The notes under the pieces were generated by a model, which had not been told where the DNA came from, searched no databases, and was given only the letters and a program-made list of their open reading frames with translations. Below, in pieces: positions 53,131 to 56,064 of a stretch of 64,000 bases of DNA. This DNA is from Hyalangium minutum. Lineage in GTDB: Bacteria > Myxococcota > Myxococcia > Myxococcales > Myxococcaceae. Each line of letters begins with the position of its first letter. Position 1 is the stretch's first letter. Both the position numbers and the translations under genes were made by a program. The stretch covers positions 310,001-374,000 of the forward strand of contig NZ_JMCB01000007.1 of the NCBI RefSeq assembly GCF_000737315.1, in the 5' to 3' direction.

Positions 53131-53784
53131 TCACCGCTCCGGTGTGGGCTCCCGCCGCAGCACGATGTCCGTGAAGTGATAGGGCGCCCACGGGCCTGTG
53201 TACTGGAGCGTGAGCAACTCGAAGCGCGCCGCCAGCGAGCGCAGCTTCGCATCGAAGGCCGCCTCGTGCTCCCGTGCCACCAGGAAGGCCGCGTTCAGGA
53301 TCATCCGCTCGCCCAGGGGGCGCACCTCGCGCACCGCGGTGGCCAGCGGCCTCAGGGACTCCAGCAGCGTCTGGGCGTCATGCCTCGCCGCTTCCCGGGC
53401 AATGACGTCCTCATCCCACAGCACCTTCACGCCCAGCTCGATGTGCCCTTCCAGCTTCGCCAGCACGCCCGTGAAGGCGTCCCGCGCCGAGCGCAGCAGC
53501 TCCACCACCTCCTCGTGGCCTCGGAACGTGAGCCCGAAGGCCGCTGGCAGCAGCGTGTGCTCGCGCATCACCGCCTCCTGCACGCGGTGGTGGGCCAGCA
53601 GGTGGTCCCTCGTGGGGTCCGGCACTGCCGCTGAGCCCTCGGACACCACCGCCGCCAGCTCGCCGTCGTGCACCGTCACCACCTCGGCGGGCGGTGTCCC
53701 CAGGCCGAGCGCGCCGAAGCGCAGCTCCTGCTTCGCGCGCAGCACCCCATACAGGTACAGGGAGGAGGTCCGGGCCATGGCCAT
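53131..53784 (-). CDS. GvpL/GvpF-family gas vesicle accessory protein (short)
   Basis: LYLYGV, LAAVVS, LLAHHRVQE, TLLPAAFG, LEGHIELGVK, ILNAAFLV, YTGPWAPYHF. Confidence 0.88.
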   Translation of the reverse strand: MAMARTSSLYLYGVLRAKQELRFGALGLGTPPAEVVTVHDGELAAVVSEGSAAVPDPTRDHLLAHHRVQEAVMREHTLLPAAFGLTFRGHEEVVELLRSARDAFTGVLAKLEGHIELGVKVLWDEDVIAREAARHDAQTLLESLRPLATAVREVRPLGERMILNAAFLVAREHEAAFDAKLRSLAARFELLTLQYTGPWAPYHFTDIVLRREPTPER

Positions 53785-53787
53785 CTG

Positions 53788-54186
53788 TCACTTCTTGCGT
53801 GCCGCGAGCACCTTCTTCACCTCCGCCACCAGCGTGTCCGGTAGACAGGGTTTCACCACGAAGGAGTCGCACTGCACCTGCTGCCCGGAGCCGGGCTCAT
53901 TGGCCAACGCGTGCCCCGTCAGTGCCACCACCGGAATGTGCTTCGTGCGCTCGTCGCTCTTGAGCCGGCGCGTGGCCTCCCACCCGTCGATAATGGGCAG
54001 GGACAGGTCCATCAGGATGACGTCCGGTATCAGCGCGAAGGCCTTGTCCAGCGCCTCGGCCCCGTTCGTCGCCTGGTCCACCCGGAACCCGGAGAACTCC
54101 AGGTACTCCGCGTACATCTCCCGCGCGTCCTGGTAGTCGTCGACGACCAGCACGAGGGGCTTGGAGTTGTCCGGAGCATTCGTCAT
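53788..54186 (-). CDS. Single-domain response regulator
   Basis: [36 protein letters not shown]; ATGA-coupled to the kinase. Confidence 0.93.
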
Positions 54187-55850
54187 GAACGCCTCATACG
54201 CCACGGCACGTGCAGCGTGAAGGTGGAACCCTGGCCGATTGCACTCTGCACGGTGACCCGGCCTCCCAGCATCGCCGCCAGACGTCGGCAGATGGACAGA
54301 CCCAGGCCGGTGCCGCCGTAGACACGCGTGGGAGAGCTGTCCACCTGCTGGAAATCCTCGAAAACCTTCTCCTGGTGCTCCGGCGCGATGCCAATGCCCG
54401 TGTCCTTCACGGAGATGCTCACCGTGGACGTGGCGAAGTCATACGCGGCCGACAGCTGCACCGAGCCCTCGTGCGTGAACTTCAGCGCGTTGGACAGCAG
54501 GTTGAGGACGATCTGCTTCACCTTCTGCCGGTCCCCGTGCAGCTCCGGCACGTCCGGTGTCACGTGGCTGCCCACCGTCAGCTTCGTCCGGGCGATGATG
54601 GGGTCCATCTCCGCCATCACCTCCTGGAGCAGCTCCGGGAGCTGGAAGTCCGTGAGGTTCAGCGGCATCCGCCCCGCTTCAATCCGGGTGATGTCCAGGA
54701 TCTCGTTGATGACCTGGAGCAGGTGCCGCCCGTTGGAGTCGATGCGCTGCAGGTTGCGCCGTTGCTGGGGCGTCATCTCTCCGTTCACGCCCTGCAGCAG
54801 CATGCTCGTGTAGCCGAGGATGGCGTTGAGCGGCGTGCGGAACTCGTGGGACATGTTGGCCAGGAACTGGGACTTGGCCGCGCTGGCCTGCTCCACCTGG
54901 AGCGCCTGCCGCCGCAGCTTCTCGTTCTGCTCGGCCAGCTCCGCGGTGGCCGAGTGCACCTTGGCCTCCAGCTCGCTCGAGGCGGAGCGGACTTGCTCCA
55001 GCAGCCGTGCCTTCTCCAGCGCCTCCGTCCGGTCATGCAACAGGGTGACGATGGAGGTGGGCTCGCCATTGTCCGCGAGCACCTGGCTGGCCGTGGCCTC
55101 CATGGGCAGCGGGGTGCCCGTGGCGGGCTCCACCAGGTGCAGCTCCCCACGCCAGCGCTTCGGGCCGCCGGGCGTCAGCAGGTGCGACAGGAACGAGGAG
55201 AAGTGCGCGTCGTTGGTGTGCGCCCGCCGCCGGGTGGCCTCGCCGCTGTCCGGAGGGGCGTAGAAGAGGCGCTCGGCCGGATCATTCATCAGCACCGTGC
55301 CGCCGGACGGGTCCGTGACGATGATGGGATCCGCCACCGAGTCGAGAATGAGATCCAACCGCAGCCGCTCCGAGCGTGCCTCCTGCTCCGAGGCCCGCAG
55401 CCGCCGGTAGCTCTCACCGAGCGCCTGCGTGGCTCGGCCCAGCGCCGTCACGTTGCGCAGCACGCACACGTAGCCCGGGGGAGAGCCCGGCTCCTGCGCC
55501 GGGGTGCAGACGAGCTCGAAGAGCAAGTCCGTGCCCTCCACCGGATCCACCAGGGCCAAGTCCCGGCGGCGCACCGGGGATGCACCGCCCGTGGCGCTGC
55601 TCTGCAGCGCGGTGTGAAAGACGCGCTGGTTGAGCTCCACGGCGCGGCGGTGGCCCTCGCTGGCGCTCTCGTCCGCGAAGAAGAGCTGGCGCGCGCGGGC
55701 GTTGGCGGTGAGGACGTGGCCCTCCTGGTGGGTGTAGAGGATGGGGTCCGTCACCGCGTCCACGAGCAGGCGCAGCAGCCCTCGCTCCTGGTCGGTGGCC
55801 GAGGGGCTCGAAGCACTGGAGGGTGTGAGGGGGACGGTGGAGGACGGCAC
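54183..55850 (-). CDS. Cytoplasmic PAS-PAS histidine kinase
   Basis: Two paralogous PAS-like repeats ([19 protein letters not shown]), coiled coil, [37 protein letters not shown]; no TM segment. Confidence 0.93.
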
Positions 55851-55854
55851 AGTC

Positions 55855-56064
55855 CTAGGCTCCGGTTCCCGTTTTTCCCGGAGGCACTCCGGGTCGCTCC
55901 AGGTGCGTGTTCACGGACTCGACGGCGAGGCGGCCACTTGGGGCAAGGGCCGAGGTTCGCGCAGGCTCCACGCCGGGCTCCTGGGCGAAGCGGATGCCCT
56001 GATCCAGGACGCGGTCCAGGATGTCGACCAGGCTGGTGCCTCCGGGATTTCGTGTGACCGGCAT
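55855..56064 (-). CDS. gvpA: Divergent GvpA-like small protein
   Basis: [16 protein letters not shown] and [12 protein letters not shown] align in register with the GvpA helices; AGGAG ribosome-binding site; ends 4 bp before the kinase start. Confidence 0.7.

Follow-up and report, generated by a model that had tools for sequence, protein, structure and literature searches.

The conserved gas-vesicle gene set comprises gvpA, C, F, G, K, L and N together with GvpJ/M-type paralogues, and the gvp genes of Streptomyces coelicolor are arranged in the order gvpOAFG-JLSK (PMC9501494). Streptomyces exemplifies a soil bacterium that carries gvp genes and makes no vesicles; its GvpA is markedly unlike that of vesicle producers (PMC4982088). 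The cluster of Serratia sp. contains regulators of its own, gvrA, gvrB and gvrC, of which gvrB and gvrC are needed for expression of gvpA1 (PMC4982088; PMC6617781). The shell protein of B. megaterium has GvpF as its primary, chaperone-like partner (PMC11445434). Here we describe a locus of the myxobacterium Hyalangium minutum where, of the conserved set, only a 69-codon gvpA derivative, hereafter gvpA*, and one gvpF are found, with the genes for a histidine kinase and a response regulator lying between them. The locus spans positions 53131-56064 of a 64-kb segment of contig NZ_JMCB01000007.1 (positions 310,001 to 374,000 of the forward strand); this whole segment will be referred to as the window.

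The data presented below show that the locus is a conserved four-gene operon, gvpA*-kinase-regulator-gvpF, of Archangiaceae-type myxobacteria. As to its function, the reading that we favor, with a probability of roughly 0.55, is that GvpA*, acting as a GvpF-binding peptide, and GvpF would work with the kinase and the regulator as a cytoplasmic signalling module. This proposal draws on sequence comparison and on analogy with Halobacterium GvpA.

Results

The gvpA*-kinase-regulator-gvpF operon is conserved in myxobacteria

The four genes are minus-strand open reading frames (ORFs) and are tightly coupled: 4 bp separate gvpA* from the kinase gene, the kinase and regulator genes overlap in an ATGA, and 3 bp lie between the regulator gene and gvpF. 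These gaps bear out the preliminary description of the locus, which was made from the sequence alone. An alternative in-frame GTG upstream of the regulator ATG, at 54204, is the mechanical start of that ORF and would give a protein of 138 aa. The preliminary description had also stated that no other gvp gene occurs in the 64 kb. We confirmed this by tblastn, using as queries all ORFs of 86 canonical gvpA loci as well as the complete gvp set of one cluster, L100 (a set that includes no gvpC or gvpN); no further gvp homologue was found in the window.

The cassette recurs, its gene order unchanged, in Hyalangium versicolor, H. gracile, Stigmatella erecta, a Myxococcaceae metagenome-assembled genome (MAG) and all metagenome contigs long enough to hold it; three shorter contigs, one of them from a Hyalangium MAG, stop inside the kinase or the regulator gene. 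Wherever enough flanking DNA is available the gaps are equally tight throughout. Two loci, L099 and L102, represent more distant versions of the cassette. The 69-aa protein is also present in S. aurantiaca and S. hybrida, and the cassette GvpF is carried by S. aurantiaca strain DW4/3-1, a genetically tractable strain. No other Pfam Gvp family was detected in the flanks of the relatives examined. Homologues of gvpG, gvpJ/S, gvpK, gvpL and the arsA-like gene are absent both from the window and from the relatives' flanks (up to 10 kb on each side). In a search with GvpF, the best 120 of 633 matches contain every named myxobacterial species a single time, and the protein matched is the GvpF of the cassette.

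GvpA* is a GvpA derivative that has lost the gas-facing hairpin

GvpA* has 41 homologues, 34 of which are exactly 69 aa long; those of S. erecta, S. hybrida, S. aurantiaca, H. versicolor and H. gracile are annotated in RefSeq as "hypothetical protein". Standard family models barely register the relationship: gvpA* scores 22.1 bits against the NCBIfam GvpA model NF006874, below the family cutoff of 100, and a precomputed PF00741 match exists for one of the 41 homologues. However, a profile built from the family aligns to GvpA structures free of gaps over residues 1-60 (8GBS, E=6.6e-11; 7R1C, E=6.8e-8). The earlier observation that helix 1 and the R..V.SV.T.L segment stand in exact register with canonical GvpA thus holds. 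The parts of canonical GvpA (PF00741; 8GBS, 7R1C) that are collinear with GvpA* are the N-terminal tail, helix alpha1 with its SLxDxLDRxLDxG motif (SLxDxLDRxLDKG as the motif of the GvpA/J/M family) and the R-x-V-V-x-S-x-x-T-x-L segment. In contrast to canonical GvpA, GvpA* has a linker in place of the gas-facing beta1-beta2 hairpin and no typical alpha2 or C-terminal region. Descent from GvpA is further indicated by the position of gvpA*, directly 5' of an orthologous kinase gene, like canonical gvpA in the clusters L100 and L073 described below.

Within the family, residues 1-26 are nearly invariant, residues 27-44 highly variable, and the C-terminal PPGKTGTGA conserved. The segment R-(I/L)-V-V-E-(S/A)-V-E-T-H-L-E is semi-conserved, with T53, H54 and L55 invariant or nearly so. 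In the distant cassettes L101 and L102, residues 1-26 and the R-phi-V-V motif are retained and the C-terminus is not conserved. Replacement of the hydrophobic hairpin by a hydrophilic segment, as originally noted, is seen in the mean Kyte-Doolittle hydropathy of residues 27-44, which is -0.65 in the family versus +1.07 in canonical GvpA. The segment is made up of 21% Pro, 20% Ala and 13% Gly (54% for the three combined), and vestigial in-frame hairpin residues (A-W, L, G) persist in some family members. A compensated frameshift was considered and rejected: the other two reading frames yield no hydrophobic hairpin, and their alignment scores (24 and 11) fall within the null distribution from shuffling (17.9 +/- 3.7).

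Structure prediction gave a concordant picture. From the family alignment, AlphaFold2 models GvpA* as a single helix, residues 12-22, with a predicted local distance difference test score (pLDDT) of about 82, and nothing else; there are no strands, and the linker has a pLDDT below 50. The hydrophobic moment of helix alpha1 is 1.90 in GvpA* versus 1.93 in canonical GvpA. With the hairpin gone, only helix 12-22 predicted and the intervening segment evolving neutrally (see below), the conclusion that GvpA* cannot form a vesicle shell, reached already in the preliminary description, is supported.

Selection preserves the N-terminal part of GvpA* and is relaxed in the former hairpin

The ratio of nonsynonymous to synonymous substitution (dN/dS) was estimated by the Nei-Gojobori method pooled over ten loci, with bootstrap confidence intervals (CI). 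Twelve canonical gvpA genes that precede an orthologous kinase gene served as control.

Constraint differs sharply along the gene, as a comparison of the helix with the hairpin makes plain. For codons 1-26 of gvpA*, dN/dS is 0.086 (CI 0.02-0.20) with a dS of 0.48, whereas for codons 27-44 it is 1.12 (CI 0.71-1.79; point estimates 1.12-1.23). In the control, codons 1-26 give a dN/dS of 0.037 and codons 27-44 a dN of 0 with a dS of 0.71. Since canonical genes show no amino-acid change in this interval, relaxation is confined to the hairpin of gvpA*. The linker codons are GC-rich at all three positions (G+C content of 0.69 at second positions, GC2), an expected outcome of drift in a genome of 68% GC. 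It might be argued that the central segment is instead a hypervariable recognition loop under diversifying selection, a view in keeping with point estimates above 1 and with a length fixed at 69 aa in 34 of the 41 proteins despite their divergence; this is very improbable, as the CI spans 1, the Pro/Ala/Gly content and GC enrichment fit drift, and the segment is predicted to be disordered.

Codons 45-56 behave differently. Their proportion of synonymous differences (pS) is 0.12 (dS 0.13) as against 0.35-0.48 elsewhere in the gene, and the very low dS at a G+C content of 0.99 at third positions (GC3) makes a dN/dS for this interval unusable. A GC2 of 0.29 alongside that GC3 is a normal coding signature; the low synonymous divergence may be due to strong codon bias or to constraint on the nucleotide sequence within the ORF. 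Codons 57-69 have a dN/dS of 0.31 and a GC3 of only 0.62. Here the sequence ACG GGA ACC GGA GCx TAG is nearly invariant at the nucleotide level, rare GGA codons included, and supplies a GGAG Shine-Dalgarno motif to the kinase gene, whose GTG or TTG start lies 4 nt past the gvpA* stop. Because these nearly invariant codons furnish the kinase Shine-Dalgarno, the conservation of the gvpA* C-terminus probably reflects a constraint on the RNA, in line with its absence from L101 and L102. Since the kinase gene has its ribosome-binding site within the end of the gvpA* ORF, translation of the two genes looks coupled.

Over whole genes, dN/dS is 0.34 for the kinase, 0.31 for the regulator and 0.44 for GvpF, and it ranges between 0.27 and 0.75 in neighbouring housekeeping genes. 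Altogether, region-specific dN/dS and conservation across genera exclude simple decay: the cassette is conserved and is not a decaying pseudogene. The alternative of a decaying operon, left open in the preliminary description, does not stand, given the constraint on codons 1-26, the confident fold of GvpF (see below) and the retention of the cassette across genera. Nor do close relatives carry a normal hydrophobic GvpA at this position, as would be expected if the H. minutum allele were a mere pseudogene; they have the same hairpin-less 69-aa family.

The kinase, the regulator and GvpF

The kinase is of the generic HisKA/HATPase type (NCBIfam kinase-core matches down to E=2e-74), and its orthologues carry the Pfam domains PAS, HisKA and HATPase_c. 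The H-box, SHEFRTPLN, is at residue 335. No transmembrane segment was detected, the highest 19-aa hydropathy window being 1.12. The regulator has matches to receiver domains only (NCBIfam, E=3e-21) and no output domain; its translation preserves the DD, D (ILMDLSLP), T and K residues. Thus, by sequence, the pair has the H-box, the N and G boxes of HATPase_c and the Asp/Thr/Lys receiver pocket of a two-component system.

GvpF matches the NCBIfam models GvpF (E=9.4e-23) and GvpL (E=1.2e-16), in both cases under the equivalog cutoff, as well as the structures 6L5D (E=2.4e-18) and 4QSG (E=3.8e-14) in the PDB; PF06386 is carried by all of its listed homologues. Its AlphaFold2 model has a pLDDT of 90.4 and a predicted template-modelling score of 0.84. 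A Foldseek search with this model retrieved 6L5D_A, the GvpF of Anabaena, with a template-modelling score of 0.80 (E=3e-14), and the protein shows the two-domain alpha/beta GvpF fold. All 33 columns that are invariant across 57 myxobacterial and canonical GvpFs are retained.

Two further features of these proteins vary among loci. The GvpF encoded after the receiver has, in canonical clusters and in most myxobacterial cassettes, an N-terminal tail of some 40-120 residues, of low complexity and rich in Lys, Arg and Pro (examples in Table 1). The tail looks histone-H1-like, and on its composition it might bind nucleic acid. In the GvpF of the window lineage it is deleted, so that MARTSS runs straight into LYLYGVL. 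Likewise, an additional N-terminal region of about 150-170 residues precedes the kinase in intact clusters and in the distant cassette L102 (Table 1); the 555-563 aa kinases of Hyalangium and Stigmatella are without it.

The operon derives from a complete gas-vesicle cluster with an embedded kinase

A scan of metagenomes with the family alignment returned, among the matches listed, canonical gvpA loci only and no new family members. The contigs bearing these canonical genes revealed full gas-vesicle clusters that contain a kinase: over about 530 residues, their ORFs share as much as 60% identity with the kinase of the window. In a first group (L029, L046, L067, L073, L076, L077 and L091), canonical gvpA is followed, in this order, by a kinase (60% identical to that of the window), a receiver (69-72%) and GvpF (40%). 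The GvpA of L073 scores 113.8 bits, above the cutoff of 100, and its GvpF gene is followed by a GvpG-like gene. L100, a MAG contig assigned to the Vicinamibacterales because NCBI lists an identical GvpF protein under that name, has the order gvpJ-like, gvpA, PAS kinase (706 aa), receiver, GvpF, GvpG, ArsA-like ATPase, GvpL/F, a GvpA-family (gvpS-like) gene, GvpL/F and GvpK. Its kinase is 58.5% identical to that of the window, its receiver 66%, its GvpF 42% and its GvpA 41% (over residues 1-56). Over all kinase-bearing full clusters of this kind the identities are 58-60% for the kinase, 66-72% for the receiver and 40-43% for GvpF. In a second group GvpF lies upstream of gvpA, and the kinase, downstream of it, shows 44-46% identity.

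Clusters of the L100/L073 type therefore have the gene order of the gvpA* operon. They differ in that the GvpA is canonical, the kinase is extended at its N-terminus by about 150 aa and GvpF begins with a basic tail (both absent in the window), and in that the L100-type cluster continues beyond gvpF with gvpG, arsA-like, gvpL, gvpS-like, gvpF and gvpK genes. In a neighbor-joining tree of 45 kinases, the myxobacterial sequences form a clade with 100% bootstrap support, which joins the first group (type-1 clade) at 100% with L100 nearest; the outgroups in this tree all adjoin canonical gvpA. Because full clusters hold the orthologous kinase and receiver, and because the outgroups adjoin canonical gvpA, the polarity is clear from the sequences: the myxobacterial operon is what survives of the 5' part of a full gvp cluster, and the embedded two-component system is ancestral. 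Three things went missing in the myxobacterial lineage: the genes that follow the first gvpF, about 150 N-terminal residues of the kinase, and the hairpin of GvpA. The idea, put forward initially, of Gvp proteins recruited to either side of a two-component system is not supported, since the order gvpA-kinase-receiver-gvpF is ancestral and occurs in complete clusters of other soil bacteria.

In the literature searched we found no description of a gvp cluster type with an embedded PAS kinase. Searches for gas vesicles in myxobacteria or Stigmatella, for gvpA of Acidobacteria, and for gvpA or gvpF with a histidine kinase or response regulator retrieved nothing relevant.

The conserved part of GvpA* corresponds to a GvpF-binding fragment

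In Halobacterium, a fragment comprising residues 1-22 of GvpA binds GvpF better than full-length GvpA does in a split-green fluorescent protein assay, while the fragments 20-47 (the hairpin) and 44-76 show no binding; substitutions at R15, K19 and G20 weaken the interaction (PMC7688916). In register, R15 corresponds to R18 and G20 to G23 of GvpA*, both invariant, and K19 to Q22. Hence the stretch of GvpA* preserved by selection matches the fragment documented to bind GvpF; the one accessory gene kept is that for GvpF itself.

A second reduction of this sort was identified. Among the best 150 cluster representatives from the family-profile search, 16 have a hairpin segment of low hydropathy. 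One of them, L105, has the second cluster order and encodes a GvpF (272 aa), a hairpin-degenerate GvpA (EAHVRASPGGIDLESGET) and a PAS kinase (41% identical to that of the window). Up to 10 kb away in both directions the locus has no further gvp gene, nor is there an adjacent receiver gene. Unrelated genes, including SusC/SusD-like ones, are found downstream of this reduced locus. That the same trio was retained in two independent reductions, surviving loss of the organelle each time, argues that GvpF, degenerate GvpA and the kinase work together.

The preliminary description had further proposed that the GvpA-GvpF pair was repurposed as an interaction module in signalling. Persistence of such a module is plausible in the light of the Halobacterium 1-22 fragment and of L105; its recruitment into a signalling system is not upheld, the gene order being ancestral.

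Table 1. Coordinates of the operon, its parts and related features in comparison loci.
Feature	Sequence	Coordinates	Strand	Basis or remarks
gvpA* ORF, 69-aa GvpA derivative, helix 1 kept, beta-hairpin lost	window	55855..56064	-	ATG start
gvpA* codons 1-26, N-terminal tail and helix alpha1, constrained core	window	55987..56064	-	dN/dS, AlphaFold2, distant cassettes
gvpA* codons 27-44, former beta1-beta2 hairpin, now Pro/Ala/Gly-rich linker	window	55933..55986	-	dN/dS, hydropathy, pLDDT
gvpA* codons 45-56, R-(I/L)-V-V-E-S-V-x-T-H-L-E, semi-conserved remnant of beta2/alpha2 junction	window	55897..55932	-	
gvpA* codons 57-69, stop and 4-bp spacer; C-terminal PPGKTGTGA; GGAG Shine-Dalgarno for kinase	window	55851..55896	-	
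Soluble sensor histidine kinase, 555 aa, PAS-PAS-HisKA-HATPase_c	window	54183..55850	-	GTG start; NCBIfam, Pfam of orthologues
Receiver-only response regulator, 132 aa from ATG	window	53788..54186	-	ATGA overlap with kinase stop
Short GvpF/L-family protein, 217 aa	window	53131..53784	-	NCBIfam, PDB 6L5D, AlphaFold2, Foldseek
Divergent intergenic region upstream of gvpA*, invariant blocks	window	56065..56288	.	alignment of 10 myxobacterial loci
GvpF N-terminal tail	L073; L100	7963-8300; 10001-10210		also in L099, L102, L003, L010, L095, L097
Kinase N-terminal extension	L100; L073; L102	7422-7900; 5391-5950; 8224-8720		
Reduced locus	L105	9006-12435		GvpF, degenerate GvpA, PAS kinase

Flanking sequences and neighbouring genes

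The interval between gvpA* and the divergent gene for an oxidoreductase with FAD and Rieske domains (Table 1) contains blocks that are invariant across the 10 myxobacterial loci aligned: CCAAGGCTAGGGA, GGTAA, CGAGGCAACAGA, CCGAAAC, CGCG(C/G)TAT and the CAGGAG ribosome-binding site upstream of gvpA*. The blocks show no sigma-70 consensus and no Rfam match; judged by their invariance, both operons may use them as regulator sites. Scans of 52800-56400 for sigma-70 promoters and intrinsic terminators found none, and an Rfam search of 52500-57000 gave a single sub-threshold chance match.

On the plus strand, at 56289-59154, a trio of genes encodes an FAD-dependent oxidoreductase with a C-terminal Rieske domain, a hemerythrin-domain protein and an HhH-GPD glycosylase. 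Synteny between the trio and the cassette holds in nearly all of the myxobacterial loci, the FAD/Rieske gene being absent in H. versicolor and L102. The hemerythrin-like protein matches the NCBIfam "PA2171 family ribosome-binding persister protein" (E=2e-26, below cutoff). From the predicted domains, a link of the cassette to redox or oxygen sensing is possible.

Downstream of the cassette are tandem, mutually very similar paralogues of about 310 aa, at 49690-50649 (+) and 51539-52477 (+), with a gene at 50715-51545 between them. They begin with M(R/K)(E/K)HIP.IRL.P.LGDD and end with RRWIRRLCQ, and the downstream copy has no NCBIfam match; the pair looks like duplicated immunity- or accessory-type genes immediately downstream of the cassette. 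Elsewhere in the window, gene 5374-6435 (+) encodes a second, unrelated kinase/receiver protein of hybrid type, whose matches to the kinase and the regulator of the cassette are weak (27-35% identity). Kinases close to gvpA in the Chloroflexota loci L004 and L005 are matched at 30% identity, which looks like general family similarity only. A connection of the malto-oligosyltrehalose synthase TreY (23420-26590, +) with gvp genes was discarded: L073 encodes a 48%-identical homologue (about 2-2250, -), some 3 kb upstream of its gvpA, and this unrelated trehalose-metabolism gene is probably there by coincidence.

Discussion

How might the four products act? We envisage that no gas vesicle would be made in this lineage and that GvpA*, produced in step with the kinase, would present a peptide of about 25 residues that GvpF could bind, as it does the equivalent fragment of Halobacterium GvpA. 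The resulting complex would then work with the soluble PAS kinase and the receiver-only regulator, either by modulating or feeding into the kinase, or by being what the phosphorylated receiver targets; the regulator itself would act through protein contacts or in a phosphorelay. In the ancestral cluster such a circuit may have coupled GvpA supply or assembly state to signalling, and in myxobacteria it would persist as a purely cytoplasmic signalling module.

A bolder version, which we put forward only tentatively, is that the kinase and receiver constitute an assembly checkpoint reading the chaperone state of the GvpA-GvpF pair, that is, free versus incorporated shell protein. They would then be an organelle-assembly feedback sensor found in many soil-bacterial gas-vesicle clusters; the myxobacteria and, independently, the L105 lineage would have dropped the organelle and kept the sensor with a minimal decoy ligand, consisting of the GvpA tail and helix 1 bound to GvpF, and the circuit would have been exapted to a new cytoplasmic output.

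Several observations weigh against the peptide-based module. A central helical segment of 34 residues, kept in the GvpFs of Stigmatella and of canonical clusters, is missing from the GvpF of the window (the protein had rightly been noted as short and missing part of its central helical insert), as is the basic N-terminal tail of most relatives and of canonical clusters; both losses could reflect relaxed constraint. Part of the conservation at the GvpA* C-terminus is due not to the peptide but to the ribosome-binding site that it encodes for the kinase. Nor does the module account for a linker that evolves neutrally and yet hardly varies in length; one possibility is that the distance between helix 1 and R-phi-V-V matters. 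Finally, beta-strand residues of Halobacterium GvpA (D24, R28 and E40) have a share in the binding of GvpF, and GvpA* shows no conservation at the equivalent positions.

The main rival explanation is that the Gvp genes are passengers, only the kinase and regulator being functional, with gvpA* translation merely feeding the kinase start and gvpF not yet lost. The neutral hairpin fits this explanation, as do the constraint on the end of gvpA* as a Shine-Dalgarno with the kinase start 4 nt beyond its stop, the lineage-specific deletions in GvpF, and a GvpF dN/dS that is the highest of the four genes. Yet an ORF serving for coupling alone needs no particular amino acids, and codons 1-26 evolve with a dN/dS of 0.086 at a dS of 0.48; they are recognizable even where the kinase is only 71% identical. 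GvpF, for its part, keeps every one of its 33 invariant positions together with a confident fold and is intact in each cassette examined, even at 47-51% identity, and the independent L105 lineage kept the same protein trio. We therefore consider the passenger explanation unlikely.

GvpA* could also modulate the kinase directly, binding its PAS or dimerization and histidine phosphotransfer (DHp) domain, with GvpF having a separate role, for example as partner of the phosphorylated receiver. In all 45 loci of the kinase tree, which span several cluster types, gvpA lies immediately 5' of the orthologous kinase gene; translational coupling implies that GvpA* and the kinase are synthesized together; and L105, with no adjacent regulator, keeps GvpA, GvpF and kinase. 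However, adjacency alone does not separate binding to the kinase from binding of the peptide to GvpF. No published case of GvpA binding to a kinase was found in the literature searched, and the documented partner of the retained fragment is GvpF, which makes a direct effect on the kinase quite unlikely.

It is highly improbable that the organism still makes gas vesicles or another GvpA-type shell from a full gvp cluster elsewhere, the operon being a regulatory leftover or duplicate: embedded regulators are indeed normal parts of gvp clusters and the evidence covers the 64-kb window, but the accessory genes listed above are missing from the window and from the relatives' flanks, named myxobacterial species appear once each among the best 120 of 633 GvpF matches, and full-text searches found no paper on gas vesicles in myxobacteria.

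If GvpA* does bind GvpF as proposed, the operon would offer a natural minimal version of the GvpA-GvpF contact: the aggregation-prone hairpin has been removed and about 25 residues kept, so that this chaperone-client contact, still structurally unexplained, would become tractable in soluble form. The comparison also brings out gas-vesicle clusters of a widespread type, in which gvpA and gvpF are separated by genes for a soluble PAS kinase and a receiver belonging to the cluster itself. Since the GvpA and GvpF genes survive with them in two independent reductions, the data suggest that the embedded regulators are functionally tied to GvpA and GvpF, and that the gene cluster for an organelle can shrink to a signalling module.

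Among known systems, three invite comparison. The gvp cluster of Serratia sp. has dedicated regulators, gvrB and gvrC, inside the cluster next to gvpF genes, as the kinase and receiver are here; Ramsay et al. 2011 are said to have described GvrB as kinase-like and GvrC as CheY-like. Unlike the H. minutum locus, Serratia has the full structural set, makes vesicles and shows a different gene order; the comparison is drawn from published descriptions of the Serratia cluster. Small-protein modulators of histidine kinases, such as MgrB, SafA and Sda, provide an analogy and nothing beyond it: each is a short protein encoded with a sensor kinase pathway on which it may act, and none has a sequence relation to GvpA*. 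Streptomyces, the other soil bacterium with gvp genes and no vesicles, keeps most of the structural and accessory genes, whereas the window keeps only gvpA*, one gvpF and the two-component system.

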